A DNA stretch of 60,638 bases from contig NIVC01002584.1 in NCBI GenBank assembly GCA_002269645.1, positions 1 through 60,638 on the forward strand, written 5' to 3'. Below the pieces are notes generated by a model. It was not told where the DNA came from. It worked only from the letters and a program-made list of their open reading frames with translations, and made no database searches. Origin of the DNA: Macrostomum lignano. Lineage: Eukaryota. The position numbers and the translations under genes are program-made. This document shows positions 171 to 51,243 of this stretch, piece by piece (position 1 is the stretch's first letter; every line of letters begins with the position of its first letter).

Positions 171-3100
171 AAACATCTTGGTGGTGCGTCCGGCGGAACT
201 CTTGCCAAAGCACCATCGGCAAGATGGACCGCTGCTTAGTCCGCGTGATGGACGCGACAGGATCGCAACCTTCAACGAACTCATCCGACAGGACGCTCGT
301 GAAAAAGTGAGCAGCATACCGATTCAATATGCAAATTTCCTCCATATTTATTTTGCAATCTTCGTCACTGTTCACTCATTCACACAATTCATTCACTGTC
401 CCAGTCACCTGTTCACTCATTCACCAATTCATTCACTGTCCCAGTCACCTGTTCACTCATTCACCAATTCATTCACTGTCCCAGTCACCTGTTCACTCAT
501 TCACCAATTCATTCACTGTCCCAGTCACCTGTTCACTCATTCACCAATTCATTCACTGTCCCAGTCACCTGTTCACTCATTCTGCAATTCATTCACTGTC
601 CCAGTCACCAGTTCACTCATTCTGCAATTCATTCACTGTCCCAGTCACCAGTTCACTCATTCTGCAATTCATTCACTGTCCCAGTCACCTGTTCACTCAT
701 TCACCAATTCATTCACTGTCCCAGTCACCTGTTCACTCATTCACCAATTCATTCACTGTCCCAGTCACCTGTTCACTCATTCACCAATTCATTCACTGTC
801 CCAGTCACCAGTTCACTCATTCTGCAATTCATTCACTGTCCCAGTCACCAGTTCACTCATTCACCAATTCATTCACTGTCCCAGTCACCTGTTCACTCAT
901 TCACCAATTCATTCACTGTCCCAGTCACCAGTTCACTCATTCTGCAATTCATTCACTGTCCCAGTCACCAGTTCACTCATTCTGCAATTCATTCACTGTC
1001 CCAGTCACCTGTTCACTCATTCACCAATTCATTCACTGTCCCAGTCACCTGTTCTTGACTTACTTGACTTAGCTGCAGGGTGGTCCGTAGACACAGCGGG
1101 GAGGCGAGGGTCGCCCATTCCGCCAGCCCCTGAAGGCCCGCAGACAGGCAGAGGCGTGGGGCCGGTCAGGGTGGTCCGCCGGTCCGTCCTGCAGCGTGAT
1201 CTTCCGTGGGGAAGAAACTGGCTCGTCTAGTCGCCCGAAGGAACTGGATGAGCCGTGGGATGCTGTCGGGCTGGCAGACCTCGTCAATGGACGGGTTCGG
1301 CCCGAGGTAGCGTAGCCGGTCTCTGTTAAAGAAGGGGCAGTGACAAACAAAGTGCTGAGCATCTTCATTGTCGCACTCGCAAAAGGGGCAAATTTCGCTC
1401 TCGAGGTCGCCTCGGAGGAAGCAGTGCCTGGCGAGGTAGCCATGGCCGGTAAGGGTCATGACAAGGGCTCGAATATCCTTCCGATTCTGGTTCAGAAGGA
1501 TGTTTCTGAGCCTGCGAGACGGGCAAGGAACCGCGGCACGAGATTGCCGGCAGTTTTGGGTGCCCGCCCATCTGTCCCTGTGGAGGGAGTCAGCCCAGTC
1601 GTCGATCTGACGATTGATGACTGTCAAGGGCATAGGGACCAGGGGGGCAGGGCCGAAGAAAGAGCCAGAGCCGCCCCTCTTGGCGAGGGTGTCTGCCAGC
1701 TCGTTCCCCGGAAACCCTGCGTGCCCTGGGATCCACTTCAGCCTGACAGTATTGCTTCTGGCCAGGAGGTTGAGCTGCCGGGCGCAGTCGGCGACTGTCC
1801 GGGAGTTCGTTGTGGTGTGGCAAAGGGCCTGTAAGGCCGCTTGGCTGTCGGAGTGGATGACAATAGTCTTTCCTCTCGTAACCTTGGCGTTCAGCTCTGC
1901 AGCTCAGGAGCTGATGGCCAGGACTTCGTTCTGGAAGACTGTGGAGAGTCTACCAGTGTGCTGGGCATGCGTGGCAATTACGCGGCCGTTGATGATGATG
2001 CAGACCCCAAAGCCGGCGCGACCGTCTTTGATGGATCCGTCCGTGTAGCAATGGACCTCCTGGAAATTCCAGTGGTCATTGGCAGCATCCCTAGAGGGGA
2101 TGGTGACCTTGTAGCGCTGAAAGAGATTGAGAGTGCGGGGTTCGCCGTCAGATAGGACGTGGAGCCCGCTGCTGTCTCTCAAGTCCTTGAGGCAGAGGTC
2201 AGCGTGGGGCAGAAGCTTGCGCTTAGCCATGGCCCTATGGGGCTGGATTCGAGTGCCAGCGTCAGCTAGACGGCGGGCAGTCTTAGCCGCTTCCCTGCGG
2301 ACAAAGATGTCCAGCGGAGGAATGTTAAGGAAGGCGTTGAGGCCATCGTAAGGAGCAGACGGAGGGGCGCTCATGATCGTGCGACATGCGCGCCCTTGCG
2401 CTCTCCTGAGAGCCTCTAGACAGGTCTTTATCTGCAGGGCGCTAGCCCAGATCAGGCCGCCATACGAGATAGCGGGCCTAACCATTGCAGTGTAGATCCA
2501 CCAGAGGCGCTTGGGGGTGAGCCCCCAGGTGGTGCCGACAGCCCTGCGCAATTGCGCGAGGACTGCGAAGGCCTTTTTGGCTTTTGTTTGAACGTGGGGT
2601 GACCAGTTCAGCCTGTGGTCCAGGGTAATACCCAGACATTTAGTCTACTTGCAGAAGGGGATTTCCCTTCCGTAAAGCGTGAGCGGCCGAATCCGCCACT
2701 TGGTCCTGCTGGTGAACATGATCGCTGCGGTCTTAGTCTCAGAGAGCCTTAAACCACAGCGCTCCGCCCATTGCTCAGCGGCGTAGATAAAGTTCTGAAG
2801 AAGGTCCCTGAGGGTATCAGGGGACGGACCAGATGCCACCGCGGTGACATCGTCCGCATATCCAACTTTCAGAATGGGGTCAGGCCGAACATCCCGGAGG
2901 AGCTCATTGATGACCATATTCCAGAGAACTGGAGACAGCACCCCACCTTGCGGGCTACCTTTGCAGACGGGACCGTCCTCTGGTAGCCCAGCAGACTGGC
3001 GGTGGCCGTGCGATGGCTGATCATGTACATGATCCATCTGGTGAGATGTGAGTGCGTTTGCCTCTCACAAAGAGCTCTTCGGAACGCCTCAAAGAGGACG

Positions 3101-6100
3101 TTATCGAAGGCGCCAATGATGTCCAGGAAGATCCCCAGAGCAAAGCCATTACCAAGCACGGCCTTCTCGAGTTTATCGACCAGGACGTGCAGCGCGCTTT
3201 CAGTGGAGCGACCCGCCCGAAAAGCGTGCTGGTTCTCGCTGAGAGGTTTGTTCTTCAGCTCAACAGAGAGAAGGCGCCAAAGCACCAGTCTCTCCATCAG
3301 CTTGACCAGGGAGGAGGTCAAGCTGATCGGTCTGAAGGATTTGATAGAATGGTAGTCCGGGCGGCCTGGCTTAGGGATTAAGATCACCTTTGCCTCGGTC
3401 CATGCCTGTGGGACATAACCAAGCGTGATGCATGCCCGAAGAAGGCTGCAAAGTTTGCGCAGGAAGCCTGGGCATTCAACCGCCTCTCTTAGGAGGGCCG
3501 GTACAATGCCGTCGGGTCCTGGGGCTTTGAAAGGCTTGAAGGAATTTGCCGCTCTCACGATGCGGTCCTCCGTGATGATAGAGGCAGCCAGCGCGTGACC
3601 TCCCTCCGAGTGATCCGGAGTGGTCTGGTTAGCTGGCTCGTTGGGGGAAAAACGCAGTGAGCATTACATCAAGCGTTTCCTCTGGGTTGTCCGTGGACGT
3701 ACCGTCGGTGCGTTTGACCGAGGAGAGCTTAGACATTTTGTCCAGCGTGAGCGCTTTCACAACTCTGGAGGTGGGGCGTGAGCCCTCTAGCTCCTCACAG
3801 TATTGTCGCCATTTTTGAGCCTTTGCATTCCTAACCTGCCTTTTAAACTCATGGATTGCTTCATGATAGGCGGTTTGGTCTGCAGGGCTCTTAGTTTTAG
3901 TTGCTCTGCGGTGGAGTCTCTTAGCCCTGCGACGGAGGTTGCCGAGCTCGGGATTCCACCACGGCGCCGATTTTTTCCCTTTCTAGGCTTTTAAAGGCAG
4001 GACGCCTCAAAGGCGGCGGTTAGCGTCTCTTTCAAAACAGTCGCGCACTCATCCGCCTCTCGGCACGACGTGATCGTGGATGGTTGGCCAGGAGACCGAT
4101 GGAATTAATTCAGGGCGAGCCCGAAGGTTTCCCAATCAGTATTTCTGGCGTTCCGTCTCCACGTAGCACGAGTTGCGCTACGCGCGGCCATTAGGTTGAA
4201 GGAGATGAACTTGTGATCCGAGAGTGAGGACACTGGAAGCACCCGCCACGCCCCAATACTCTGGTAGAGTCTGGGCGTTGCGAGCGTAGCGTCGATCACC
4301 TCCGACCACCGTCCGTTGTCAAAGGTAGGGGTGGACCCAGAGTTGCAGAACTCGAGGGTCGTAGAGGCAACGTAGGCTAGGAGGTCTTCGCCTCTCTGAT
4401 TAATGCCAGTGCTGCCCCAGTGAGTGTGGTGGGCGTTGATGTCGCCGGCAACCATTAGCTCGTAGTTTTTGGCAGAGCAAAGCTCTACCAGCGTAGCGAG
4501 GGCTCTGGGGACGACCGCAGCATCGCCTGGTAGGTAAACCGAGGCAATGAGGGTGGTCTTCCCAGGAAGAAGGTCCTCGGATTGGATGACGCAGATGTCC
4601 CTGTTGGACAGGTCCGATCTGAGCCACCACTGAGCGTTTTGCTCGCAAAGATGCAAGCTCTGGGAGGCTGGTTGGCCTCGCGAGGGTAAGTAAAAAAAAA
4701 CAATTGTAGCCAGCAGGGGCGTTTTGAGGCTTACCTCTGAGAGTCCAGGGTTCCTGGACGAGGATGAGCCCCGGCTTGTCGAGCTCGGCGTAACGCATAA
4801 GGTTGACCGAGGCTGCGACGCAGTGCTGCAGATTAATCTGCAGGCAATGGATTCCCTGGTTGCTGATCATTATCACGCAGTTGGGGAATCGTTGAGCAGG
4901 TCATCCTCCTCCTTTTCAGTGGTGGGTGACCCGCAGACCTCCATGGGAGTTTCAGCGTCCTCAGCAGTTAGGGTGGCTGTGGAGTCCTCCGCGGACGTGA
5001 GCCCAGCGTGGACGTTACCGTCGCCTCCCCTGCGTGCTTCGGTGCTGTCACTGCCCGTCCCCTTTGCCTCGTCGGTCAGGTCGATGCGGGTGGCGCCAGC
5101 CTCCTGGTGAGTCACAGACTCGAACCAGTCGGTCGGAGCCTCCCCGCTTAGAGTCTGGCCTTCTGGCTGTTGGGGTGGAGCGCGAGAAGCGCGGGCCCGC
5201 TCACGATGCGCACGAAGGTTCTTGGCCTGGTCCAGCGCGCGCTGGATCAGGCCGGACCTCCGGGTGCTCCTGGCGGGTCTGCGATTGCGATTTCCGGTTT
5301 CAGCAGCGCGAACTGCCTTACCGGGCATAGGATCGGCCGTTTGCCTCGGCTTCTTTGCCGGAGGAGCCCGGGCCCCAGTTCCGGTTTCGGAAGCCTTGGC
5401 ATTCTTGGCTTCATCAGCTTTCCGCTCCTCGCAGCGGAGGATGGTCAGCTGAGTCAGACCAATATGAATTGTGGGCTTAGGCGGAAAGCGCTTAGCCCAG
5501 TCATCAGAGAGCCCTAGGATCACCGTAGCCCCCTTCTCCTTGCGGGAAGTGGCGTGGTGTAGGAGCCCGTTGACCTCAAGGTGGGGTGCAGCTTTAGCAA
5601 TTTTTGCCTAAGCTGATCTCCGGACTTAATGGCACTGCCGGCCGGGATCCAGACGCGAAAGCGCTGGGTCTTTTGTCGTTCGCCCTCGCTAGCGAAGACG
5701 AGCTTGCCGAGCTTCTTGGGCCAGTTCAGCTTTGGCAGAAGCTCGCGTAGATTGCGGCTGCTCTCCTCCGAGCTGCACCAGATGAAGATGCAGCCGTCGG
5801 TCTTGGCAGACTTGACCACGCTCACAGGGCGGCCCGCCAGGAGCTGGTCGATGAGCGCAGCATCGATGGTGCACCAGGCACTGTCGAGCTCGTCGGCCGT
5901 GAGGTCCTGCTCTTCCCCGAAGACGATGACCGCCGGTTGGAGCTTGACCTTTGAGGCGTAGTTGGTGGCGGCGGTTCCCGAAGGCCCGGCCGCGCTTGTA
6001 GCAGGTATACTGGGTGGCTCACCAGCGGGGGTTGTATCCTGGGGGGCAGGGGTTGCTGTGGTTCCTTTCGGCCCAACAGCAGCCTCGCCCTCCCTAGGTT

Positions 6101-8320
6101 CCCCCTCCGCCGGTGGCCGGCCCGCAGTACCCCGTAGTCACCTGTTCACTCATTCACCAATTCATTCACTGTCCCAGTCACCTGTTCACTCATTCACCAA
6201 TTCATTCACTGTCCCAGTCACCTGTTCATATATTTTGTCATAACTAGCCAGCTATCACGGTTATGTGGTTTTTCAGCAGTGCATTTTTGTTTTGTGATTC
6301 AAATAGTTATTTTTATTACCTAATTGTTGTTAGATCAACGAATATTTGCCGGCTCAGAGCTTCGGTCCGCTGAAGGAAACAGTCAGCGTCCTGCAGAAGG
6401 TGGCTACGTTTCTGCGAGCCTATAGGTTGCAAGACGTTGCTGCTTCTGGGCTCCAACTTGATTTAGAAAGTTTCGGCGCGTGCTGCACCCTGTGGATGAA
6501 ATACTACCTTCGAAGAAAGAAAGTTTACGAGGCTCGCCGCAGGGTAAGCAAATTTAACATGTTACAATCACTCGCATTAAAGTGCAAAAAATTATTTTTA
6601 AAGAAGTACACTACACTGGAGCTAGCGATGTCCTCGTAGGGTTTCACTAAAGTATTTATTAAACATTTTTAGACTTTTAAGAGCAAACTTAAAGACGTTG
6701 TTAATTGTACGGTCGCGGACGGCATCAGATGGCTCGAGGATCCCGACAAGGAACTAAAGGTGAGTGGAAATAATGACCAGAATTTTTATCAAGTGCTAAA
6801 CTTCCGTTAGGAATGACCAGAAAACCAATTAGCATCCTGCCGCCATCTTCCCACTGACTTTATTCAGGCCTACTGTCTTTACCTCTAACCGTGTACTCAG
6901 TCATCAACCTAACTAATAAAAAACCATTCATTGTTAATGACGACAAACTGTTCTATATCAGTAACAAACCTAATTAAGTTACATTATTTCGAAATTGTAA
7001 CGACAGCAAAACGTCCCTTTCTTCAGGTGGAAAGCCACAAGACGGACTCCGAATACGGCTCCGCCAAGATAAACGTGAGCGAGTGTCGCCAGCTGCTCCA
7101 GCGGGTCGTTGAAGAACGTGTCAAAGAAGGCCCTACGGAGCCTCTGCTTCGAATTCCCTATGGCGATTTCGGCAGACTATTTGCGGCTTACAGAGAAAAG
7201 TTCAACCCGATTCTCAGTGGCGTCACACACACAGACTTCCGCAAATTTGTCGAGACTAGGGTAAGTTTCTACACTTTCGTCTAAACGACAATATAATTTT
7301 GCCTATTCTCTGACTTAGTCACATTCTTAGGCAATAAGGGTTCACTCATTCAACAATGCATTCACTTTCCCAGTCATCTATTCACTCATTTAGCAATGCA
7401 CTCACTCTCCCGATCACCTGTTCACTCTCCCGATCACCTATTCACTCATTCAGCAATGCACTCACTCTCCCGATCACCTGTTCACTCTCCCGATCACCTA
7501 TTCACTCATTCAGCAATGCACTCACTCTCCCGATCACCTGTTCACTCATTCAGCAATGCACTCACTCTCCCGATCACCTGTTCACTCATTCAGCAATGCA
7601 CTCACTCTCCCGATCACCTGTTCACTCTACCGATCACCTGTTCACTCATTCAGCAATGCGTTCACTCTCCCGATCACCTGTTCACTCATTCAGCAAAGCG
7701 TTCACTCTCCCGATCACCTGTTCACTCATTCAGCAATGCGTTCACTCTCCCGATCACCTGTTCACTCATTCAGCAAAGCGTTCACTCTACCGATCACCTG
7801 TTCACTCATTCAGCAATGCGTTCACTCTCCCGATCACCTGTTCACTCATTCAGCAATGCACTCACTCTCCCGATCACCTGTTCACTCATTCAGCAATGCA
7901 CTCACTCTCCCGATCACCTGTTCACTCATTCAGCAATGCACTCACTCTCCCGATCACCTGTTCACTCATTCAGCAATGCACTCACTCTCCCGATCACCTG
8001 TTCACTCTCCCGATCACCTGTTCACTCATTCAGCAATGCGTTCACTCTGCCGATCCCCCTGTTCACTCATTCAGCAATTCAGTCACATTTAGCGTCATCA
8101 GGTCACTTATTTATCTTGAAGAAAAAAGGCGACAGTTTATAAGTTTCTTTAATGAAACAATAAAAAATTATAGGGTCTACTGGAAGGACACGACCTGAAA
8201 GTCCTTGGTAACCGCCTGAACCACAGCACCGAGGTTGCCATGGCACACTACCAGGTTCACACGGATGCGTATCGGCGTGCCGGGCCCGTATCGTTGATAA
8301 AATCGTTTCGGCCGCTATAA
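171..8320 (+). CDS. Intron-containing tyrosine recombinase (DNA breaking-rejoining, Crypton-like) gene, 5'-incomplete; exons 171-306, 6334-6543, 6673-6759, 7027-7260, 8174-8320
   Basis: Each exon is bounded by AG/GT and all four junctions join in phase 0. The spliced product contains VESHKT..YGSAKINV (catalytic Lys hairpin), VTHTDFRKFVET (box II Arg) and LGNRLNHSTEVAMAHYQ, with His and Tyr 9 residues apart as in lambda Int H333/Y342. The first catalytic Arg was not found, so the gene may be defective or an exon may be missed. Confidence 0.72.
365..1054 (+). repeat. 40-bp minisatellite (GTTCACTCATTCACCAATTCATTCACTGTCCCAGTCACCT), about 17 copies, in intron 1 of the recombinase gene
   Basis: Direct reading of tandem units. 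It explains the repetitive ORFs 94..1230 and 329..1072. Confidence 0.97.
1043..1054 (+). repeat. Left target-site duplication AGTCACCTGTTC of the LINE (right copy 6136-6147)
   Basis: An identical 12-mer lies immediately on both sides of the element, and the minisatellite phase resumes at 6136. Confidence 0.9.
1166..4876 (-). pseudogene. LINE ORF2 (APE-RT-RNase H-zinc finger), disrupted
   Basis: ORF pieces 4400-4876, 4105-4656, 2869-3558, 2645-3037, 1904-2551 and 1166-1633 form one pol protein. It is broken by frameshifts (poly-A run near 4695, near 4650, near 2965) and in-frame stops (TAG at 2645, TGA at 1904). Confidence 0.92.
4873..6135 (-). pseudogene. LINE ORF1 (gag-like), open to the 5' boundary without a start codon, one frameshift near 5560
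   Basis: ORFs 5520-5825 and 4873-5523 lie directly upstream of, and abut, ORF2. The frame reads open back to the insertion boundary. Confidence 0.75.
6136..6228 (+). repeat. Continuation of the 40-bp minisatellite on the right of the LINE
   Basis: Same unit as 365-1054, about 2.3 copies. Confidence 0.95.
7341..8085 (+). repeat. 40-bp minisatellite (TTCACTCATTCAGCAATGCACTCACTCTCCCGATCACCTG) with 20-bp half-unit slips, in intron 4 of the recombinase gene
   Basis: Direct reading. The unit aligns without gaps to the intron-1 unit. Confidence 0.96.
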
Positions 8321-8942: not shown

Positions 8943-9660
8943 AAGTGCATGTAATAGTGTCCGAATAGATGGGCCAGCTATATTGGAGCAAAGTGCATGT
9001 AATAGTGTCTGAATAGATGGGCCAGCTATATTGGAGCAAAGTGCATGTAATAGTGTCCGAATAGATGGGCCAGCTATATTGGAGCAAAGTGCATGTAATA
9101 GTGTCCGAATAGATGGGCCAGCTATATTGGAGCAAAGTGCATGTAATAGTGTCCGAATAGATGGGCCAGCTATATTGGAGCAAAGTGCATGTAATAGTGT
9201 CTGAATAGATGGGCCAGCTATATTGGAGCAAAGTGCATGTAATAGTGTCCGAATAGATGGGCCAGCTATATTGGAGCAAAGTGCATGTAATAGTGTCTGA
9301 ATAGATGGGCCAGCTATATTGGAGCAAAGTGCATGTAATAGTGTCCGAATAGATGGGCCAGCTATATTGGAGCAAAGTGCATGTAATAGTGTCCGAATAG
9401 ATGGGCCAGCTATATTGGAGCAAAGTGCATGTAATAGTGTCTGAATAGATGGGCCAGCTATATTGGAGCAAAGTGCATGTAATAGTGTCCGAATAGATGG
9501 GCCAGCTATATTGGAGCAAAGTGCATGTAATAGTGTCTGAATAGATGGGCCAGCTATATTGGAGCAAAGTGCATGTAATAGTGTCCGAATAGATGGGCCA
9601 GCTATATTGGAGCAAAGTGCATGTAATAGTGTACGACTAGATGGGCAGGCTGTAGTAATA
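8943..9660 (+). repeat. 48-bp minisatellite (AAGTGCATGTAATAGTGTC(C/T)GAATAGATGGGCCAGCTATATTGGAGCA), about 14.5 near-identical copies
   Basis: Direct reading. It produces the 16-aa repeating ORFs 8931..9701 and 8941..9615. Confidence 0.97.
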
Positions 9661-12643: not shown

Positions 12644-13400
12644 CCTCTCACCCGAGCTCATCATAGACCTCGTAAAGAAGGCAATTCCACGGAAATTCCA
12701 TGGCTATTCAACACATCAACACTGTATAAAAACTGTGACCTAAAATTGCTAATACAAAACAACAGAAATGCAGAATGCCCGAATTATACACACACCTCTC
12801 ACCCGAGCTCATCACAGGCCTTGTAAAGAAGGCAATTCCACGGAAATTCCACGGAAATTCCATGGCTATCTAACAACTCCAACATACTTTAATATAAAAA
12901 TTGTGATTATACATTTGCTTATGCAAAACAGCAGAAATACAGAACGCCCGAACCCTACGCACTTCTCATCCGAGGTAATCTCCGACCTTTGTAAGAAGGC
13001 GTACCCGAGAAATTCCAAAGCAATCTAACACTCCGACACTGAATAATAACTGATTTAAAACTACCAATGCAAAACATCAGAAATGCAGAATGCCAGAACC
13101 ATACACGCACTTCTCACCCGAACTCATCTAACCTGACTAACACCACCTCCACCTCAGCCTAACAGCAATTTTATTTATGCAAAACATCAGAAATGAGAAT
13201 GCTTGAACCATCAACGCACTTGTTACCTCAGCTAATCTTAGACTTGTAAAGAAGGCAATTCCACGGAAATTCATAGCTATTCACACACTGTGAATAATAA
13301 CTGTGACTTAAAACTACTATGCTACACACCAGAAATGCAGAATGCTTAAACCGTACACGCACCCTGAGCCCTCGTCTCAGACACTACTAACTTCACCTCC
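12644..13400 (+). repeat. Degenerate tandem repeat of about 150 bp (CTCACCCGAGCTCATC...AAGAAGGCAATTCCACGGAAATTCCATGGCTA...CAGAAATGCAGAATGC), 5-6 copies
   Basis: Units start near 12644, 12795, 12961, 13109, 13218 and 13360. The same repeat occurs in ACSF3 intron 2 at 37140-37480. Confidence 0.8.
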
Positions 13401-13437
13401 ACCTCAGCCTCACACAGCGATCTCACATGCAGCTCAC

Positions 13438-13745
13438 CGAACTCCGGTCTCGCAGACCCGCCTCACGGCTGCCCGCTGCGAGTCCGGCCGCTTCTCCAGG
13501 TGGTCCAGCAGCCTGCCGTACATGGTGGGCACCGCCATGAACACTGAGACCCGGGGCCAGGCGCGGGCCAGGCGCCAGCACCAGTCAGCTGCTGCCACAC
13601 CTGCTCAGGCTGGAAGCTGCGGTTGATGAGCACACTGCCTCCGGCCTGCAGCGGTGCCAGCAGGCAGTTCTCCAGCCCGTGCACGTGGTGCAGCCGCAGG
13701 CAGTTCGGCGTCAGGCAGCCGCATTGCCATGGGTTACCACGACTC
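13438..13745 (-). pseudogene. Internally deleted copy of ACSF3 exon 2 ([36 protein letters not shown])
   Basis: Near-identical to 37512-37850 apart from deletions. The flanking intron 13255-13437 matches 37330-37511. Confidence 0.9.
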
Positions 13746-17501: not shown

Positions 17502-19168
17502 ATGTTCATCATCCAGGCTGATCACCAACAGTCGCTCTGTTTAGCACTCGATGCCGTGTCCACCACCCTGTCCAGACGCCTGTCCCCGCTCGCTCGCTCC
17601 GACTCGGTGATGGACATCTACGAGGCGCTGACGGCGGCCGTGTACCTCATGTCCAGCGCCTCCAACCCGTTGAAAGTCAGCCGCGAGTCGCGACGACTGT
17701 CGTTCGAGCAGGGCGCCTGGGTACACATTGGCAGGACGCAGACGGTTGAGGACATGGTCGAGAGCGGCTTCTTCTACCTTCAGGTGAGCTAAAGGTGATA
17801 GTTAAGAAGCAAACGTTTAGGAGCTAAATAGATCATCCTCAGCGCCTGGTCTGAGGTCTATGATCTATTATATGGAGGGCTTAAGCAGTCGACTCCGCAG
17901 TTTACAAAGTACGAGCGTATTCACAATCAGACTCAGACCCACTAGGCTTCACTACTGAGCAGGATCTAACGGTGTATCATTTATTCTGCTGTCTTGTCAA
18001 AGTGCAACTGATATGTGGTAGTAACCATAGGAAGTGTTTTCTAAGGCCAACACGGAAGCTGCATTCTGCAGACAATCATCGATTGGCAGGACAGCACAAA
18101 GACCTAAAGATCAGTGAGACAGCCACCCGCAAAGCTAAGAGACATGGCTATTGCATGGAATCAATTCAGCAGTGTCTTCTTAGTGTTATAATAATTAGTT
18201 GATGGATTTATGTTTTGGATGATGTTCACTGTCTGGTTTAAGCTATCACCTTTATTAGTACGAGTTATTGAATTAAACCCGAATGTCTCTTGAGATCACG
18301 GGGTTTTGACGAAGAAGTTGATTTACAGCATGCATTCATCGTTACAGCATGTATTTAACTACAGGAGGACGACCACGTGAAATGCTTCTTCTGCGACCTC
18401 GGCCTCAAAGACTGGGACGCTGGCGACGTCCCCGAGATGGAGCACGCCAAGTTCAGCCCGCTCTGCTTCTTCCTCAAGAGCTCGCGCGGTCTGGAATGGC
18501 TGCGCAGGTCGAGTCCCCGACCTCCTAACTACCCGACGTCCTCCACCCGACAGGACCACAACCAGCTGCTGCGGATTCTGTCGGACGAGCTGCTCAGCGA
18601 GCCGGTGGACATTGTGTGCAAGCTGGGATTCTGCGACACCAAAGTGCTGCTCTGCATCGCCAGGAAGTTCATCCGGTTCAGGCAGAAGTTCACCAGACAA
18701 GAGCTGCTGCAAGAGATGCACAAGGAGTGGGACCGCGAGATGGCGGGCGAGCCCGAGCACTTCATCGGCAAGTTCGACCTCGCAGCCGTGCTCAGACAGT
18801 TCCGCGACTCCATGGCCTCCGTTCCCGGACCTCCGCCCGGCTCCCAGCGACAGCCGCTGACCCAGCAGCAGCAGCTGCAGCAGCAGGGCGGCTCTGTCGG
18901 TAACCGCTGCCGGAACTGCAACATCCGGGATGTGGAGATCGTGTGTCTCCCCTGCGGTCACCTGAGCCTCTGCTTGCAGTGCAGCCGAACCGTCCGAGTG
19001 TGTCCCGCCATCGGCTGCGGACAGCAGGTGGACAACGTCCAGGGAACTGGCGTTCTTTCGGTTGAGCGGAATGACATCCGTAATCGAGTGCACAGCACAC
19101 CTCGCTACAACGGATTTTCATTTGGCCGAATGCGCGTTTTACGTTTAGGCGAGAGTGGGCTGTTTTAA
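17502..19168 (+). CDS. Inhibitor of apoptosis protein (BIR-UBA-like-RING), copy 1; exons 17502-17783, 18365-19168; 361 aa
   Basis: The spliced BIR reads RRLSFEQGAW..DMVESGFFYLQ/EDDHVKCFFCDLGLKDWDAGDVPEMEHAKFSPLCFFL. It is followed by UBA-like VCKLGFCDTKV and RING CRNC..CLPCGHLSLCLQC..VCP. The GT-AG join is phase 0. Confidence 0.9.
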
Positions 19169-22100
19169 ACGCAGTTCGTAAAAAATTACCTGCTGAATAT
19201 ATATTCGATGGTTGTTTGATTGACACTGTAGGGTAAGATAAGACTAAAAACAGTTATAGATGATGTCCTCTAGTTTTGTGATTCCCTGTGCTCCCTGAGC
19301 AAGTGACCTGAGTCATCTTATGAGTTACAGCTGTCACCTTTCCTCACCTTCGAGTTTCGTAAGTAAATGGGACTATGCGTTGTGCTTTTCTTGTGCACAA
19401 GGGCAGTTTGGTTAGACCCTCGAGTGTGTTTGAGTTCTCTTCAGTAATGTACATGTGATCCGGCCGTTACATAGCTGGTTGCATCTGTTAAGTTACGTGC
19501 GGAGTTGCTCTTGGGAATATGATTTTAAAACTTTAGGTATTCATTTTTACGCTTAAATTATCGTAAAACTCTCCTGATTTCATCACATTTTTGTAACAAG
19601 TTGGCTTTTTGAGGAGCGTGTGTTCAGGAATTTTCAGACGTTTTGTTTTCCATCGAGTTTTCAATTGAAATCTTTTTCTGCTAGCCTACCATTGCCATAG
19701 CTAGTTTAAAGTGTTCGAACAATCTAGAAAACATGCAGCTCAAATTAATCCAGCTGGTTGCTCAAATTTTCTGAAAGGAACTCAAAATGTATACCCTATT
19801 CTGTTTTATTCAATTCAAATCATTTTCTGTACGGAGGCGCTGAGCCGACGACTCTAATATAAAATAATTTCGGACTGTTATAGCTTTATCTTTCTGGAAT
19901 TTCCGCGGAATTACCACGAGATGGCCTTGGAGTTGCCGTAAAGTTGTAAAAAATTTCGGTTTGAGTGTATTTTCCATATTTGTATAATACAATTGTGCGT
20001 GCCATGCAATTATATTGTCCGATTGTCCTTTACAGCCCTTTGTTTCTATAACGAGATGCTACCGCGGAGTTGCCCCGGAAATGCCACCGAATTGCCGTGG
20101 AATTGCCGCGGGAATTTCGTAAAAGCATATTTATTGTGGTACTCTCACATCTGTGAAGTTTTTCCCCTCCTCCGCCATTTCGCTTACTTCACATTTTTGT
20201 GTCCTTGTTTACATGTACTTAAAATTGATTGGTGTACCTGTAAATATTTACTTTATCAACTAATGACATTTATCGTATTTTGGAATATCTCGAAAAATGC
20301 TTACTCTTCTAGCTGATGATTGCCGATTGGTTCGTGAAAGTCCTTTCTGGCAGCTGATTCGAATGCCTACGAGCGTACATGTACATTCGCCAGGGGAAGC
20401 TGCACTGCATGATGGAGTCACGCACTTCAACCGTAAGCGGTGCCTTGACTACTACTGCTGTACTTGCTTATATAACTACAATTTGGTTCAGGATCGTTAG
20501 GCTTCGTTTTGCCTATTGTGTGCTTCTATATTCAATGGTACATGCAAATATATATAGAAATTCTTTTGAATTTTAGACTATAGCAACATTTAACATATGT
20601 ATGCTTGTGTACTATTACAGTGCACGTTCGCAGACAGAAGGGAGACAACCGCTGCTGAACACAGCTGTTTGGCGGCAGATCCTGCACATGGCGTCGAGCC
20701 GCTGCATCAGCCGGACGATGTTGCAAGAAGCTGCAGCAGCACCAGAGCTGGGGATTTCTGCGCGAGGCAACCAGCAGGTAAGGGGGCTTAAAAAACCATA
20801 AGCAAAACTCTATCTTATAAGCAAAACAGATCCAACGCAAATGCCTTAAATATCCATGGCGTCAGTTCACCAAATTACATGCACATTCACGTAACTGCTT
20901 TTTTCTCGATTTGGTTAGCGGCTATTCCATGGAAAAGCCGTGGAAAGTCCTTGTCCTTGTCTGACTCTCGGGTAAACGGGGTTCGATTCCATCGCGCGTG
21001 CCTGGCAACACTTTAATTGAGGGTTATTCATCTATTGGGTATGCCACAGCAGTACTGAATAGAATATCCCAGCATAGAAAAAGTTTTCGTATAATAGGTC
21101 ATTCAAAAAATTAGATTGATGAGAATGAATTTGGTATTAAGTATACAGACATGAGGGTCGTACTATAAAGCTGTCGTAGCGTAAGTTCGATCGTACGTCG
21201 GAACTTTTACACTGCGGAGATAGGAGCTAAGAACGATCTTATCTTACGATGGCTTTATAGAACGGGTCCATGGTATACAGCTCTGTTGGATATTCACGCT
21301 GGTGTAAATAAAAAAGAGTCGAGTTAAGAAAAAAAATCTTTGCTTTACGAGTATATAGAAAATATCTGGCCTGGTAGGTACTGCAATTTGCGCAGCTAGC
21401 TGCATATGTCTTCTGTTTACTCAACAGTAAGCGTTAATATTCAGCACCATGTGATGTTTTTTGCAGTCCTAACAGAAGGAACAATAATGATTAAATTTGC
21501 ATCCAGCGTCAGTGCTATTTTTAGACTTGCAGCAAAACCTCCGACGTTTAACAACTCAGCTGACTACTGTATAGGAACTAGCAATCAGCGCCTCGGTTGG
21601 GGAGGCAACAAAAAATTGAATAAACTACATGTACATGTAGCTTCTGACCTCTCAGCTTTGACAACTTCTAGCAATCCCCCCGTAAGTTTGACAACTCAGC
21701 ATCTCAGCAAAACCCGATGATTGTAGATAAACCTCTCTATTGGCAAACAGAACGGTTGACTTCAGCTCACTACTCTACGCTGCAATGACGCAATGTTGTT
21801 CAACTTTTGTTCAGGGTGGCAGTTTTCAATTTTACTGAGTGCTCATACGAGCTATATGCCTTAGCAAATAGCCCCCCCCTAACCTATTTAAAGTAGTTCT
21901 TTTTAAAAATGATTATTCATCTTTTTATAGTGGACACTCCTTAGCTACTGTCCTAACAATTAGTTAATAGTAACTAATGCTTGCAAACGGAGAGTAGAGT
22001 ACATGTATTACAGTCTTGCCATGGGCTTGCCACGGTAGTGTCACAGACTGTCCATGGCCGAACCGCAAGAGTTCAATATAAGACTTGACTAGCTAGAGAG

Positions 22101-22435: not shown

Positions 22436-25400
22436 GCTTTTTACTTGGCAAGTTATCTACTGTAATTAGTTTTACGGAAAATACCTTTTAAGAATTTAAA
22501 AGTATTGGACTAACGTATGTTGCGATTTCAAACCTTATAATATGCACCTTGCCTCCAGACAGCAGTTCCGAAGTGTCGGGCATCCTGGAGGTCAGCGGTC
22601 CCCTCGTGTTCAAAGAGTACTTCGGCCGGCCGGAGGACACAGCTAAGGAGTTCACCGAGGACGGCTGGTTTCGCACCGGCGACTCGGCCGCCTGTGACCT
22701 CGGCGGCAGCTTCCGCATACTCGGCCGGACCTCGGTGGACATCATAAAATCCGGTGGCTACAAAATCAGCGCCCTGGAGGTCGAGGCCGCGTTCTTTGGC
22801 CATCCGGCATTGGCCGAATGCGCGGTGGTGGCCGTCCCGGATGACACCTGGGGCGAGCGGCTGGTTCTGGTGGCGGTGCCGGCGCCTGGGCAGCCGCAGG
22901 CGGATCTGGCCGGCCTGCAGGCGTGGGCGGCGCAGCGCTTAGCCAAGTACAAGTGGCCTAGGGAGCTGCGGGTGAGAGCGTTTTACCCCCAGAGATTTTT
23001 GGTTGGTCGGTTGGTCGGTTGGTTGGTTCTGACTAGCAGCTATTAGAGAGGCTATTTTTGGAATTTTTGGTGGTTCATATCTTGATAGTCAGGTAAGTTC
23101 CTAGATGGATTAGCTAAAATCGAAGTGATAAATAGACCCGCAGTCATCCAGAAGGCAAGCACTGACCATTTTTATGCTTATAATTTCATAATTTAGTTAT
23201 CATCCTGCGCCACTTTTTATCCAGTTTGCATTGCTTCTGCGCTTCCAGATTTTGGACAGCCTGCCCAGAAATGCCATGGGCAAAGTTAACAAGAAGCAGC
23301 TCAAACTGATGGTGCAGTCTGCGACTGACGGCTCTTGACTGATTTGTATTTGATTTGTCTTTGCCATTATTTGTCTTTGATTAATGAGAAATCCGACTAG
23401 CTGAATTTATTGCCTCGGTGATTGTCTATAAAATCGTTATTTAAATTGTCTTTACTTATTTTGCTTGTTATTATCATCAGTTTGCAGTGTCTCAGATCGT
23501 AGCCAAGTCGCCAGCTGTTAGTTTGGTGTAGGAAAGTCCAACAGTCAAATAAATAGTTCGTAGATTCGTAGAATGAAGGTGAATTTCAAAGGACTCAGGC
23601 CAGCTTCACAGACCCGATATATTATAAAACCAACATCTCCAAGCACTCCTGTTGTTGAAGGTCCCATAGGTCCCATTGTAATTGATGTAGACAGCTCTCC
23701 TGTAAGTTTTAGACATCATACTCGTAGGTGTTTGTGGATTTTTCGGCACTGCAAAATGGCGTTGATTTCGGAATGCATAGCAACTGAATGATTTATTGCA
23801 CCCCTCCTCAATGCAATTTCTGCACTGCTGTTGCCGCAGCTGTTCTCACTGGAGGCTTTGGAGTTAATTTTTGTCAAGCGTAAATTGGTCAGAAAAGAAG
23901 CAGCGAATCACCACAGGCTCAACGCATTCATTTTATGCCTTGTATCATCATTCCTGTCAGAGCTTCAGTTTTCTTTGTCTTCTTCCCTACTGTCAGCATG
24001 TGCTGCTAAAGCGCCAACTGCGCGGCGGACTAGTGCCACTATTTTGTGGGCAAATTTGGCTAACATTTTTTTTAGTTTCACAATTGTCATGTGTCCGTGG
24101 CCTGTCTGTCAGTGCCAGAGAGTAATGAAGCCTTCTGCCAGTTATCAAAGTGCCGCCTACCGTTCGCTAAAGATTCCTTCATTAAAATTGCCAGCCATCC
24201 CTCAAACCGCAGTACAAATGGCATCCCTGATGATCCTAACAGAAGATTCCTGCAAAGCCGCTAAAGTTTCGAAAATCCCTGAAACTCTCCAGCTGAGGTC
24301 CCTTAGAAGTGACGTCGTTTACCCAAACTACCGATTTTGCTCTGTCGCCTTAAATTGTTGCTTCGAATCGAATCGAAAGGAAAGTGAAAGCACTTATATT
24401 GCGTATCATCTAACACCGATATCAACAATGAGGAAGCTGCTCCTTTGGCAGGTTTATCCGCAATTAGTGGGTACTAGTCCGCCGTGCAGTTTTTCTCTCC
24501 TATTTTGTGCCGCTTTCTGCAGTGTTATTGATTCACAACAAATCATATACTTGAATTATATTCTTCTACTCCAAAAACGTCTTAAAAAACACGATGGCAG
24601 TCATCCAGGCTGCTCATCAACAGTCGCTCTGTTTAGCCCTCGATGCCGTGTCCACCACCCTGTCCAGACGCCTGTCCCCGCTCGCCCGCTCCGACTCGGT
24701 GATGGACATCTACGAGGCGCTGACGGCGGCCGTGTACCTCATGTCCAGCGCCTCCAACCCGTTGAAAGTCAGCCGCGAGTCGCGCCGACTGTCATTCGAG
24801 CAGGGCGCCTGGGTACACATGGGCAGGACGCAGACGGTTGAGGACATGGTCGAGAGCGGCTTCTTCTACCTTCAGGTGAGCTAAAGGTGATAGTTAAGAA
24901 GCAAACGTTTAGGAGCTAAATAGATTATCTTCAGCGCCTGGTCAGAGGTCTATGATCTATTATATGGAGGGCTTAAGCAGTCGACTCTGCAGTTTACAAA
25001 GTACGAGCGTATTCACAATCAGACTCAGACCCACTAGGCTTCACTACTGAGCAGGATCTAACGGTGTATCATTTATTCTGCTGTCTTGTCAAAGTGCAAC
25101 TGATATGTGGTAGTAACCATAGGAAGTGTTTTGTAAGGCCAACACGGAAGCTGCATTCTGCAGACAATAATCGATTGGCAGGACAGCACAAAGACCTAAA
25201 GATCAGTGAGACAGCCACCCGCAAAGCTAAGAGACATGGCTATTGCATAGAATCAATTCAGCAGTGTCTTCTTAGTATTATAATAATTAGTTGATGGATT
25301 TATGTTTTGGCTGATGTTCACTGTCTGGTTTAAGCTATCACCTTTATTAGTACGAGTTATTGAATTAAACCCGAATGTCTCTTTAGATCACGGGGTTTTG

Positions 25401-26130
25401 ACGAAGAAGTTGATTTACAGCATGCATTCATCGTTACAGCATGTATTTAACTACAGGAGGACGACCACGTGAAATGCTTCTTCTGCGACCTCGGCCTCAA
25501 AGACTGGGACGCTGGCGACGTCCCCGAGATGGAGCACGCCAAGTTCAGCCCGCTCTGCTTCTTCCTCAAGAGCTCGCGCGGTCTGGAATGGCTGCGCAGG
25601 TCGAGTCCCCGACCTCCTAACTACCCGACGTCCTACACCCGACAGGACCACAACCAGCTGCTGCGGATTCTGTCGGACGAGCTGCTCAGCGAGCCGGTGG
25701 ACATTGTGTGCAAGCTGGGATTCTGCGACACCAAAGTGCTGCTCTGCATCGCCAGGAAGTTCATCCGGTTCAGGCAGAAGTTCACCAGACAAGAGCTGCT
25801 GCAAGAGATGCACAAGGAGTGGGACCGCGAGATGGCGGGCGAGCCCGAGCACTTCATCGGCAAGTTCGACCTCGCAGCCGTGCTCAGACAGTTCCGCGAC
25901 TCCATGGCCTCCGTTCCCGGACCTCCGCCCGGCTCCCAGCGACAGCCGCTGACCCAGCAGCAGCAGCTGCAGCAGCAGGGCGGCTCTGTCGGTAACCGCT
26001 GCCGGAACTGCAACATCCGGGATGTGGAGATCGTGTGTCTCCCCTGCGGTCACCTGAGTCTCTGCTTGCTGTGCAGCCGGTCCGTCCGAGTCTGTCCGGC
26101 CATCGGCTGCGGACAGCAGGTGGCCAATAT
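22436..26130 (+). repeat. Left arm of an inverted duplication of about 3.7 kb (right arm 30280-33996)
   Basis: ACSF3 exons 4-5, the intergenic region and both IAP exons are mirrored; coordinate sums stay constant at about 56.4 kb. Homology starts inside ACSF3 intron 3 and ends in the last RING codons. Confidence 0.93.
22559..23338 (+). pseudogene. ACSF3 3' fragment (exon 4 22559-22971, exon 5 23249-23338) lacking exons 1-3
   Basis: Both exons are open with intact splice sites ([33 protein letters not shown]). Homology to the full gene ends at 22436 and no upstream exons are in the same orientation. Confidence 0.88.
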
Positions 26131-26260
26131 CCAGGGAACTGGCGTTCTCTCGGTTGAGCAGAACGACATCCGTAATCGAGTGCACAGCACACCTCGCTTC
26201 AACGGATTTTCATTTGGCCGAATGCGCGTTTTACGTTTAGGCGAGAGTGGGCTCTTTTAA
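24594..26260 (+). CDS. Inhibitor of apoptosis protein (BIR-UBA-like-RING), copy 2; exons 24594-24875, 25457-26260; 361 aa
   Basis: Same motifs and splice phase as copy 1. Confidence 0.9.
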
Positions 26261-29220
26261 ACGCAGTTCGTAAAAAATTACCTGCTGAATATATATTCGA
26301 TGGTTGTTTGATTGACACTGTAGGGTAAGATAAGACTAAAGACAGTATAGATGATGTCCTCCAGTCCTGCTGTGATCCCCTGTGGTCCCTAAGCAAGTGA
26401 CCTGAGTCATCTTATGAGTTACAGCTGTCACCTTTCCTCACCTTCGAGTTTCGTAAGTTAATGGGACTATGCGTTGTGCTTTTCTTGTGCACAAGGGCAG
26501 TTTGGTTAGACCCTCGAGTGTGTTTGAGTTCTCTTCAGTAATGTACATGTGATCCGGCCGTTACATAGCTGGTTGCATCTGTTAAGTTACATGTGGAGTT
26601 GCTCTTGGGAATATGATTTTAAAATTTTAGGTATTCATTTTTACGCTTTAATTATCGTAAAAACTCTCATCACATTTTTGTAACAATTATGTTGGCTTTT
26701 TGAGGAGCGTGTGTTCAGGAATTTTCAGACGTTTTGTTTTCCATCGAGTTTTCAATTGAAATCTTTTTCTGCTAGCCTACCATTGCCATAGCTAGTTTAA
26801 AGTGTTCGAACAATCTAGAAAACATGCAGCTCAAATTAATCCAGCTGGTTGCTCAAATTTTCTGAAAGGAACTCAAAATGTATACCCTATTCTGTTTTAT
26901 TCAATTCAAATCATTTTCTGTACGGAGGCGCTGAGCCGACGACTCTAATATAAAATAATTTCGGACTGTTATAGCTTTATCTTTTTCTGGAATTTCCGCG
27001 GAATTACCACGGGATGGCCTTGGAGTTGCCCTAAAGTTGTAAAAAATTTCGGTTTGAGTGTATTTTCCATATTTGTATAATACAATTGTGCGTGCCATGC
27101 AATTATATTGTCCGATTGTCCTTTACAGCCCTTTGTTTCTATAACGAGATGCTACCGCGGAGTTGCCCCGGAAATGCCACCGAATTGCCGTGGAATTGCC
27201 GCGGGAATTTCGTAAAAGCATATTTATTGTGGTACTCTCACATCTGTGAAGTTTTCCCCTCCTCCGCCATTTCGCATACTTCACATTTTTGTGTCCTTGT
27301 TTACATGTACTTAAAATTAATTGGTGTACCTGTAAATATTTACTTTATCAACTAATGACATTTATCGCATTTTGGAATATATCGAAAAATGCTTACTCTT
27401 CTAGCTGAATGATTGCCGATTGGTTCGTGAAATTCCTTTCTGGCAGCTGATTCGAATGCCTACGAGCGTACATGTACATTCGCCAGGGGAAGCTGCACTG
27501 CATGATGAAGCCACGCACTTCAACCGTAAGCGGTGCCTTGACTACTACTGCTGTACTTGCTTATATAACTACAATTTGGTTCAGGATCGTTAGGCTTCGT
27601 TTTGCCTATTGTGTGCTTCTATATTCAATGGTACATGCAAATATATATAGAAATTCTTTTGAATTTTAGACTATAGCAACATTTAACATATGTATGCTTG
27701 TGTACTATTACAGTGCACGTTCGCAGACAGAAGGGAGACAACCGCTGCTGAACACAGCTGTTTGGCGGCAGATCCTGCACATGGCGTCGAGCCGCTGCAT
27801 CAGCCGGACGATGTTGCAAGAAGCTGCAGCAGCACCAGAGCTGGGGATTTCTGCGCGAGGCAACCAGCAGGTAAGGGGGCTTAAAAAACCATAAGCAAAA
27901 CTCTATCTTATAAGCAAAACAGATCCAACGCAAATGCCTTAAATATCCATGGCGTCAGTTCACCAAATTACATGCACATTCACGTAACTGTTTTTTTCTC
28001 GATTTGGTTAGCGGCTATTCCATGGAAAAGCCGCGGAAAGTCCTTGCCCTTGTCCGACTCTCGGGTAAACGGGGTTCGATTCCATCGCGCGTGCCTGACA
28101 ACACTTTAATTGAGGGTTCCTCATATATTAGGTATGCCACAGCATTACTGAATAGAATACCCCACCATAGAGGAAAACGATTTTTCATAATAGTTTCATC
28201 CAAAAATATTAATGAATGAGAATGGATTAGTAGGTATTAAGTATACACAGACATGATATTCAGCTGTGTTGGATAACCACGCTGGCGTGAATAAACAAGA
28301 ATCGAGTTGAGTTAAGAGAAAATAATATCTTTGCTTCTATATAGAAAATATCTGGCTCGGTAGGTACTGCAATTTGCGCAGCTAGCTGCATAGTCTTCTG
28401 TTTACTCAACAGTAAGCGTTAATATTCAGCACCATGTGATGTTTTTTGCAGTCCTAACAGAAGGAACAATAATGATTATATTTGCATCAGGCGTCAGTGC
28501 TATTTTTAGACTTGCAGCAAAGCCTCCGACGTTTAACAACTTTGACTACTGTGGGAACTAGCAATCAGCGCCTCGGTTGGGGAGGCAACAAAAAATTGAA
28601 TAAACTACATGTAGCTTCTGACCTCTCAGCCTTGACAACTCAGCAATTCCCCCGTGAGCCTTGAAAATTTAGCAAATTCCCTGAAAGCCTTGATAACTGA
28701 GCAAGTGACCTTGTTAGTTTTTGCAAAACCCGATGATTGTAGATATATTATTCAGCAATTTTGAAAACAGCCACCCAAAGCATTGACAGGCAGTGCGATT
28801 GACTTCAACTCACTAACACTGCAATGACGCAAGGTTGTCCAACTTTCGGTCAGGGTAGCAGCATGCCTTAGTAAAAAGTCACCCTACCTTAAAAATAGTT
28901 CATCTTGTAATAGTAGACACCTGTTTTGTTCGCCAAAATTAACAGTTGTAGCTAACAGTAACTAATGCTTGCAAAGGGAGAGTAGAGTACATGTACTACA
29001 TACAGTCTTGCCATGGACTTGCCACGGTAGTGCCACAGACTGTCCGGGGTTGAACCGCAGGAGTGCAATATAAAGATTTGACTAGAGAGCCACCTGCATA
29101 CATAATAGTAAAGAATCCAGTGTGAAACAAAATAAGACAGAGATGCGACGCGCAACGATTTATTGGTGAGTATATTGATGTGGATTTATTCAAATTTAAC
29201 CATACAAAATTAGCGACAAC
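24600..29220 (+). repeat. Direct segmental duplication, copy B (partner 17508-22230)
   Basis: See copy A. Confidence 0.92.
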
Positions 29221-40597: not shown

Positions 40598-45522
<4,925 letters not shown>

Positions 45523-46126
45523 GTTGCTGGGTGCGGCTGAAGGGTGTTTAAAAAATATGACAAGAAAAGTTATAAACAATAGCTGTTGCTAATAACTGCA
45601 GTTTAACTACAACAAAGTTTTTTTTCTTTAAAAGTGCATTGATTTTTTCATGGATACTGAGATAACTAGCTTGGAAATGGGGTATATGCTTAGTAAAACA
45701 GTCTCACTACTTTCAGTTTAGTAGCAAGGGGGAATACATAAGCTTAGAACTGAGTTTGTAGACATACATGTAAATAACTTGCTACTAAAATGTATGGTAG
45801 CTTGAGCTAAAGCATATAGTGAGAGTGATAAATAAGAACTAGGCGGTGATATAAGAGTAAGGATTTTAATCTAAGTAGCCCATCTATTTATTCTAATATC
45901 AATGAAGATTTTTATATTAAAAATTTCTGCAATTTTTTGCTCCAGAGCTAGTAATGACAACAAAAATTTAATATTGCGGTGAGAATATACAATATTTTAA
46001 TGTCAAACATTTTTAAATGTTATTATAAGTAAAATTTCACTAAATTTTTATAAAAAGTATTCTATCCTTCCAAAAAAGTCTGAGAAATCCAAAAACTGCA
46101 ATGCAAAAATAGTTATTTGCTATTAA

Positions 46127-50970: not shown

Positions 50971-51243
50971 ATATCTTCGTCTTTATCCTTGATTAATCTC
51001 CCCCTTTTCCTGTCTCCCCGCTCCCAGCCCCTTAGCCCAAGTGTAAGGTCGCTATCTCCTATCTCCTATACTCTCCTATGAATTTCTGTGCCCAAGACTA
51101 TCACAAACAGAAAACAAGCATCAGCTTATATCAAATGATAGAAATCCTCACGTTACTCTGTGTGGGCAAAAAAGCAGTTTAGTTTTGTGTCTATCGAACA
51201 AATTATCCAAAAATCCATTTAAAAGTGTCAACTTGACATGAGT

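Follow-up and report, generated by a model that had tools for sequence, protein, structure and literature searches.

Five exons of a gene from an uncharacterized, putatively recombinase-like family in the flatworm Macrostomum lignano

A spliced gene at the left end of the contig

The left end of contig NIVC01002584.1 of the flatworm Macrostomum lignano (GenBank assembly GCA_002269645.1) carries the 3′ part of a spliced gene whose predicted protein resembles tyrosine recombinases (YRs). The contig was analyzed over its 60,638 nucleotides, and this whole stretch is referred to below as the window. Five GT-AG exons on the plus strand join in phase to give 270 codons and a stop codon (translation of 171-8320; Table 1). 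Base 171 is the last base of a split codon begun to the left of the window, and the 5′ end of the gene therefore lies outside it. The explanation we favor, with modest confidence, is a resident, intron-bearing cellular gene of an undescribed recombinase-like lineage, either domesticated or decaying, rather than an active or recent Crypton.

All five exon segments are open, and each is preceded by AG, with a pyrimidine tract at the acceptors. Exons 1-4 end before GT, with the donors, in order, AAA/gtgagc, AGG/gtaagc, AAG/gtgagt, and AGG/gtaagt, whereas exon 5 ends in the stop codon TAA at 8318-8320. The eight splice sites are all canonical, and the 810 nt over the five exons contain neither a stop nor a frameshift. 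Base composition separates the two kinds of sequence, with 46-56% G+C in the exons versus 27-37% in flanking intron sequence. Three motifs stand out in the spliced protein: ESHKTDSEYGSAKINV (HKT..YG; K149, codon 7039-7041), THTDFRKFVET (R216, 7240-7242), and NHSTEVAMAHY (H239, 8222-8224, and Y248, 8249-8251). The preliminary description of this DNA, made from the letters alone, had proposed five exons of this type with the quoted motifs, and translation, splice signals, and homology all confirm them; the spacings that it gave, 23 residues from R216 to H239 and 9 from H239 to Y248, hold in the spliced protein.

Homology supports most of the gene model. A hidden Markov model (HMM) of seven homologs, built without the window protein, matches that protein with 109 bits (E = 1.3e-35). 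The alignment to the family HMM continues over junctions 1/2, 3/4, and 4/5, so these three junctions are backed by homology in addition to their splice signals, and the alignments of the five homologs retrieved by the full database scan (see below) span the 3/4 and 4/5 junctions. Junction 2/3 is in phase and has strong splice sites, but it falls where the protein shows a gap of 57 positions compared with the family. This junction alone has no support from alignment continuity, a point that counts against our reading: it is a predicted junction in a predicted transcript. Judged from the sequence, the five-exon spliced gene is nonetheless real, far beyond chance. The window holds one copy of it.

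Table 1. Exons of the recombinase-like gene, intron 2, and the repeats in and near the gene
Feature	Positions	Strand	Description
Exon 1 in window	171-306	+	NILVV...QDAREK, part of the SAM-like N-terminal domain; AG 169-170, GT 307; 56% G+C versus 27-35% in flanks
40-bp minisatellite, intron 1	364-1054	.	17.3 copies, 96% matches (Tandem Repeats Finder)
Degraded non-LTR retrotransposon (LINE, long interspersed nuclear element), intron 1	1055-6135	-	Inserted in the minisatellite; not part of the gene
Right remainder of the intron 1 40-bp minisatellite	6136-6228	.	Beyond the LINE
Exon 2	6334-6543	+	Remainder of the SAM-like (core-binding-like) domain, ends ...KKVYEARRR; with exon 1 covers HMM positions 36-122
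Intron 2	6544-6672	+	129 nt, 31% G+C, in frame, two stops
Exon 3	6673-6759	+	TFKSKLKDVVNCTVADGIRWLEDPDKELK; start of the retained catalytic domain; without arginine at the Arg I position
Exon 4	7027-7260	+	Beta-hairpin Lys K149 and Arg II R216; columns invariant in 8/8 family sequences
Second minisatellite, intron 4	7340-8078	.	Related 40-bp unit
Exon 5	8174-8320	+	H239, candidate nucleophile Y248, stop TAA; H, V, A, and Y invariant in the family
48-bp minisatellite	8943-9646		14.7 copies, 98% identity; ~600 bp downstream of the stop codon

An unnamed family and its predicted fold

When 1.84 billion cluster representatives were scanned in full with HMMER, five homologs of the window protein were retrieved, here numbered P0001-P0005 (E = 7e-14 to 3e-8). 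An alignment-based search added P0006 and the distant P0007. A word-index search with the single window protein found no homolog, and when alignments were used instead it recovered only P0004, P0006, and the distant P0007; scans of the JGI metagenomes and IMG/VR with the family alignment found no relatives. The homologs are 464-776 amino acids long. P0002, P0008, and P0009 are the Macrostomum lignano "hypothetical proteins" Mlig028483g1-g3, which lie on three large contigs. The remaining homologs come from ENA metagenome and Logan assemblies, where they are lone intronless open reading frames (ORFs) on AT-rich contigs of 1.9-4.5 kb, and comparison of the flanks of the homolog contigs found no mutual similarity. 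P0005 and P0001, which are clearly distinct members, both derive from ENA ERZ23491819 (L006, L007); more than one paralogue is therefore present in at least one community or organism.

At the Macrostomum locus examined, a single exon of 726 codons encodes the recombinase-like part, at least one further exon lies upstream of it, and the neighboring gene is Miff. On M. lignano contig NIVC01000073.1 (10743-13628), six to seven tandem copies of a ~450-bp unit precede the large coding exon, and the unit includes the first ~60 codons of that exon.

The layout common to the family alignments (A1-A3) comprises one or two C2H2/CHHC-like zinc fingers, a SAM-like helical domain, and a C-terminal catalytic domain with the conserved motifs GNA[SCH]RPD, HKT..YG, T[NH]TxYRKYIET, and Hxx.VA.xxY. 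The five motif residues R/K/R/H/Y are invariant among the aligned homologs, and the window copy is without the first of them. This first arginine, Arg I, sits in GNA[SCH]RP in six of the six close homologs and in KGSRP in P0007. In the HxxR box, the His is replaced by Thr, with His or Asn four residues before the Arg. The helical domain of P0006 matches the Pfam profile Phage_int_SAM_5 weakly, just under the cut-off (E = 9e-4). The zinc finger, SAM-like domain, and R/K/R/H/Y layout recur in P0007 and P0010 (L004 133-1824 and L005 109-1800, from two ENA metagenome assemblies), which carry at their C-terminus a Myb/telobox-like domain (Pfam Myb_DNA-binding, E = 4e-6) with weak PDB matches to TRF1, TRF2, and TBF1. 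These two proteins suggest a wider, still unmapped superfamily.

Searches of Pfam, NCBIfam, and PDB sequences with the window protein and its homologs gave no match for the catalytic domain in any member. This includes Phage_integrase, a profile against which the preliminary description had proposed to check the protein, and DUF3504, which matched neither the window protein nor any homolog at E up to 10. We found no literature on the family or on the Macrostomum gene name. The family is an unnamed, uncharacterized lineage whose sole label on record is "hypothetical protein," which bears out the earlier suspicion of an uncharacterized lineage.

Evidence for the fold comes from structure prediction, profile matching, and motif order. 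An AlphaFold2 model of the P0004 domain, computed from an 8-sequence alignment, had a predicted local distance difference test (pLDDT) score of 79.8 and a predicted template modeling (pTM) score of 0.61. In a Foldseek search of BFVD with this model, the top matches were phage integrases (E = 3.8e-3 to 1.8e-2, probability 0.99-1.0); others included nudivirus VLF-1 and integrase, an Mx8 integrase, and a "DNA_BRE_C" protein, and nearly all of the first 19 matches were integrases or other proteins of the superfamily. Against the PDB, the top five matches were to vaccinia/variola topoisomerase IB, XerH, and the Tn1549 integrase, with weak scores (E = 0.6-1, template modeling [TM] score 0.31-0.44). 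The model of the window protein itself was poor (pLDDT 52), and its fold search was meaningless. The catalytic-domain fold is thus a predicted property of the homolog P0004 and, in these models, not of the window protein.

The window protein does contribute evidence of its own at the level of profiles and motifs. Its residues 162-257 match positions 344-441 of 611 in the PHROG family phrog_1 (integrase) at E = 1.8e-4, and the matching region holds Arg II, His, and Tyr. Controls with the reversed sequence and six shuffles matched no integrase family, and their best E was 0.05. Lys, Arg II, His, and Tyr follow one another in the expected order, and hhalign pairings with Crypton and YR profiles, although non-significant, paired Arg I, Lys, Arg II, His/Trp, and Tyr colinearly. 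The Arg-His and His-Tyr spacings are 23 and 9 in XerD and Cre and 22 and 9 in lambda Int, and the R-K-R-H-Y chemistry is common to poxvirus type IB topoisomerases and VLF-1. The P0004 structure, the phrog_1 profile, and motif colinearity constitute three independent lines, each of moderate strength, and we consider the assignment to the tyrosine-recombinase/type IB topoisomerase fold probably right, short of proof. The preliminary description had called the protein a tyrosine recombinase and had likened it to lambda integrase. The first claim gains from these three lines, but the description had overlooked that Arg I and two helices are absent; the second stands for the spacings, which cover only Arg II, His, and Tyr.

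Several observations weigh against this assignment. No member of the family matches a curated profile, be it Phage_integrase, DUF3504, an NCBIfam entry, or a PDB sequence. Spurious HMMER matches at E ~0.002 occur in scans of this kind, and the phrog_1 match alone is not decisive. The Foldseek E-values are modest, and the P0004 model was built on only 8 sequences. Profile-profile comparison likewise gave no connection to any known recombinase group. For this comparison, catalytic segments of CryptonA/F/I/S, DIRS, and bacterial/viral recombinases were taken from Additional file 4 of Kojima and Jurka 2011 (PMC3212892), each group was realigned, and the groups were compared by hhalign; the sequences were machine-read from the PDF supplement and may hold small errors. 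The family scored P = 0.015-0.63 across all known groups (CryptonA 0.19, CryptonF 0.63, CryptonI 0.015, CryptonS 0.44, DIRS 0.08). These values did not improve on those of a reversed-sequence control (0.02-0.83 overall, 0.05-0.83 for the Crypton groups), whereas most pairs of known groups matched at P = 1e-7 to 1e-17.

Such results would suit a protein that is not a recombinase relative at all but some other helical DNA- or RNA-binding protein, in which the R/K/R/H/Y residues and the fold matches are a coincidence or a model artifact. The lack of a significant sequence-profile link to curated YR families, the weak PDB scores, and the shallow alignment behind the model all point that way. However, among the top 19 BFVD and top five PDB matches almost all are YR-superfamily proteins, the phrog_1 match is independent of the model and falls in the expected C-terminal region, the spacings agree with those of XerD, Cre, and lambda Int, and the five motif residues are invariant in the family. 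We regard coincidence or artifact as highly improbable.

Loss of the Arg I segment in the window copy

The 57-position gap noted at junction 2/3 comprises HMM positions 123-179, and the break falls exactly at that junction. In the P0004 model, the corresponding segment forms two helices (H132-151 and H157-169) followed by the Arg I motif. The start of exon 3, TFKSKLKDVV, aligns to FSFxxGNASRPDV of the homologs and has no arginine at the Arg I position, and Arg I is accordingly missing from the window protein. Intron 2 stands where the family has the 57 extra positions, including the two helices and GNASRP. When intron 2 was read through and scored against the family HMM, no residual homology was detected (96 of 200 shuffles scored at least as well), and tblastn of the homologs against the window found the missing Arg I segment encoded nowhere in it. 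Intron 2 has an intron-like composition. An intronized exon was considered as the origin of the gap and rejected, given that the read-through is no better than shuffles and that tblastn found no such segment in the window. As far as sequence can tell, the missing segment would most simply be explained by exon loss.

A second deletion, of ~14 residues, lies in the N-terminal domain of the window protein. Nine family-invariant columns fall in its gaps, namely in the Arg I segment and the N-terminal deletion. Of the columns invariant in the six close homologs, the window protein keeps 23 of 33, as against 44 of 214 majority matches elsewhere. Because invariant residues are preferentially kept and no stop or frameshift is present, protein-level constraint appears to have acted on the lineage during most of its history. 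Well-studied recombinases that lose Arg I cleave much less or not at all. With Arg I and two core helices missing, the window protein is thus less likely to be an autonomous recombinase than a decaying gene or a derivative with a DNA-binding or regulatory role.

The same deletions allow a bleaker reading, in which the copy is dead: some gene or element in the family would have lost the exon with Arg I and two helices and become a pseudogene, unexpressed or without function, whose remaining exons stay open only as the loss was recent. The 57 missing profile positions and the nine invariant columns in gaps fit that history, as do the N-terminal deletion, the change of 10 of the 33 invariant residues, the poor AlphaFold2 model, and the absence of homology support for junction 2/3. 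Yet the reading frame is uninterrupted through 810 nt and eight canonical splice sites, the exon/intron contrast in G+C is sharp, intron 2 included, and K, Arg II, His, and Tyr are all kept. A dead copy is possible but, on this balance, doubtful.

Intron passengers, provenance, and known systems

The introns hold a LINE and minisatellites, as the preliminary description had reported, and these would be later passengers rather than parts of the gene. The LINE, ~5.1 kb long, is near full-length and frameshifted, has a short TTGACTTAC-type tandem tail, and shows 57-60% G+C within an AT-rich intron. On the minus strand, RVT_1 is split between two ORFs (E = 6e-14 and 2e-14) and is accompanied by an Exo_endo_phos_2 endonuclease domain (E = 6e-20). 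A 12-bp target-site duplication, AGTCACCTGTTC, is present at 1043-1054 and 6136-6147. The only reverse transcriptase (RT) belongs to this antisense LINE, which has an EEP endonuclease and its own target-site duplication, so a DIRS-type arrangement is excluded; the earlier statement that no RT is linked in cis to the recombinase-like gene holds.

The minisatellites of introns 1 and 4 have related 40-bp units (GTTCACTCATTCA[C/G]CAAT[T/G]CA.TCACT.TCCC..TCACCT). In intron 1 the array is 96-100% uniform; that of intron 4 has diverged further and shows higher-order periods of 80-140 bp. Their common origin could lie in a repeat-carrying mobile element or in local duplication.

Downstream of the gene is a field of duplications and inversions. 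It contains a 7.09-kb direct segmental duplication of 98-99% identity (17509-20615 versus 24601-27708), inverted copies at 30283-33947 (94-97%), and an outer direct pair (13169-13468 versus 37243-37542, 94%). These repeats carry ORFs with BIR and RING domains, similar to inhibitor-of-apoptosis (IAP) proteins, and C-terminal fragments of AMP-binding enzymes. We looked for a connection between these duplications and the gene and saw none, in agreement with the preliminary description; the repeats start >5 kb past the stop codon. Farther along the window, GC skew reaches +0.35 to +0.53 at 42000-46000 and -0.43 at 50000-52000. The skews coincide with a low-complexity array of 10/15-nt period (43961 to ~45000) whose minus strand encodes SPLLS repeats. 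The long ORF of this array also holds a histone H2A-like stretch, recognized by eye; Pfam found no histone domain there.

The preliminary description had pointed to an old Crypton-like DNA element, and an intron-bearing copy of a Crypton-type DNA transposon, now immobile, does account for part of the data. The protein has a predicted YR fold, there is no RT on the same strand, the KT...YG motif is like CryptonF "GKTNQHGRxEYG," and most homologs are lone ORFs, uninterrupted by introns, on short contigs. Cryptons encode no protein other than a YR, are known from six animal phyla, and leave molecular fossils (PMC3212892). Nevertheless, the hhalign comparison with CryptonA, F, I, and S was no better than the reversed control, at P values remote from those at which known groups detect one another, and there is no DUF3504 or Phage_integrase match. 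Only one copy lies in 60 kb, the flanks of the homolog contigs share no similarity, and the three Macrostomum copies occupy single loci beside ordinary genes, with an upstream exon at the locus examined. A zinc-finger N-terminus, moreover, is not among the Crypton domains described in PMC3212892. By profile comparison, the family is not detectably a member of Crypton or DIRS, and nothing shows mobility. The Crypton label did not withstand the profile comparison, and we judge an immobile Crypton copy unlikely.

Our preferred reading, a resident cellular gene of an undescribed recombinase-like lineage, draws on several features of gene-like behavior. The window has the gene once, and in Macrostomum three named relatives occur, each on a large contig of its own; the locus examined there adjoins Miff and carries an upstream exon. 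The window copy keeps 23 of the 33 invariant residues, and its introns are old enough to contain a decayed LINE with its own target-site duplication. On the other side, most homologs are isolated ORFs without introns on short contigs, as would also be expected of repeats. Domestication of a Crypton YR with partial loss of catalytic residues has precedent (PMC3212892).

Under this reading, full-length members of this small animal family would combine one or two N-terminal zinc fingers, a SAM-like domain of core-binding type, and a C-terminal domain of YR/type IB topoisomerase fold. The candidate active site would consist of Arg I (GNASRP), Lys (HKT), Arg II (T[NH]TxYRKYIET), His (H[RK]PxVA), and Tyr (QSY). 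By analogy, these proteins may bind DNA through the zinc fingers, with the SAM-like domain and the catalytic domain closing around it as a clamp. A phosphodiester would then be attacked by the conserved Tyr to give a covalent 3′-phosphotyrosyl intermediate, followed by religation, while the two arginines, the hairpin Lys, and the His would stabilize the transition state. This scheme follows the chemistry by which lambda Int, Cre, XerD, and vaccinia topoisomerase are known to act. The window copy retains K149, R216, H239, and Y248 and would have lost the Arg I segment by exon loss. This copy may retain DNA binding but probably cannot act as a recombinase on its own.

To our knowledge, animal tyrosine recombinases are known almost only from Crypton- and DIRS-type elements and from catalytically dead DUF3504 descendants. 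The present family has a predicted recombinase fold, a full conserved catalytic set, no detectable Crypton or DIRS link, and no annotation. Its gene-like behavior is seen in the introns of the window copy and in the flatworm, where there are three copies and an upstream exon at the examined locus. A stronger proposal is that the family represents an undescribed recombinase/topoisomerase-like lineage, distinct from Crypton and DIRS, that several invertebrates keep as host genes and whose full-length members are catalytically active; we put this forward tentatively, as a serious possibility but not a probable one. If it were true, some animals would keep a cellular enzyme that breaks and rejoins DNA, and the window gene would be an Arg I-less paralogue or regulator. 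The family would then be a new source of recombinase-derived host genes and, possibly, of a new genome-engineering enzyme. For the locus itself, the practical outcome is a corrected gene model, together with the warning that this copy is without Arg I.

Comparison with known systems places the family near several of them. DIRS, Ngaro, PAT, and VIPER elements resemble it as animal sources of YR genes; unlike DIRS and Ngaro, the window gene has no RT or RNase H on its strand, the only RT being that of the antisense LINE. Poxvirus type IB topoisomerases are the top PDB fold matches of the P0004 model (1a41, 2h7g, 3igc), and VLF-1 is among the BFVD matches. The topoisomerase scores are the weak ones given above, with 12-13% identity, and the N-terminal domain is a different one.

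Phage and bacterial integrases (lambda Int, XerC/D/H, Cre, Tn1549/Tn916 Int; phrog_1) provide the best structural matches of the P0004 model. They have in common with the family a predicted combination of SAM-like and catalytic domains and the R...K...R...H...Y order, with Arg II-His and His-Tyr spacings of 23 and 9 in the window protein. Unlike these integrases, the family is eukaryotic, has introns in some members, carries N-terminal zinc fingers, and does not match Pfam Phage_integrase; the His of HxxR is Thr in the family, and the window copy is without Arg I.

Cryptons and the DUF3504 genes are alike to the family in being eukaryotic YR-type proteins with no linked RT, and the CryptonF motif resembles the KT...YG hairpin motif of the family. 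Their N-terminal domains differ from those of the family, whose zinc fingers have no counterpart among the Crypton domains described in PMC3212892. The catalytic residues that were lost differ as well: the DUF3504 genes (KCTD1, ZMYM2-4, QRICH1, KIAA1958, and WOC) lost Tyr and Arg II, whereas the window copy keeps both and lost Arg I.

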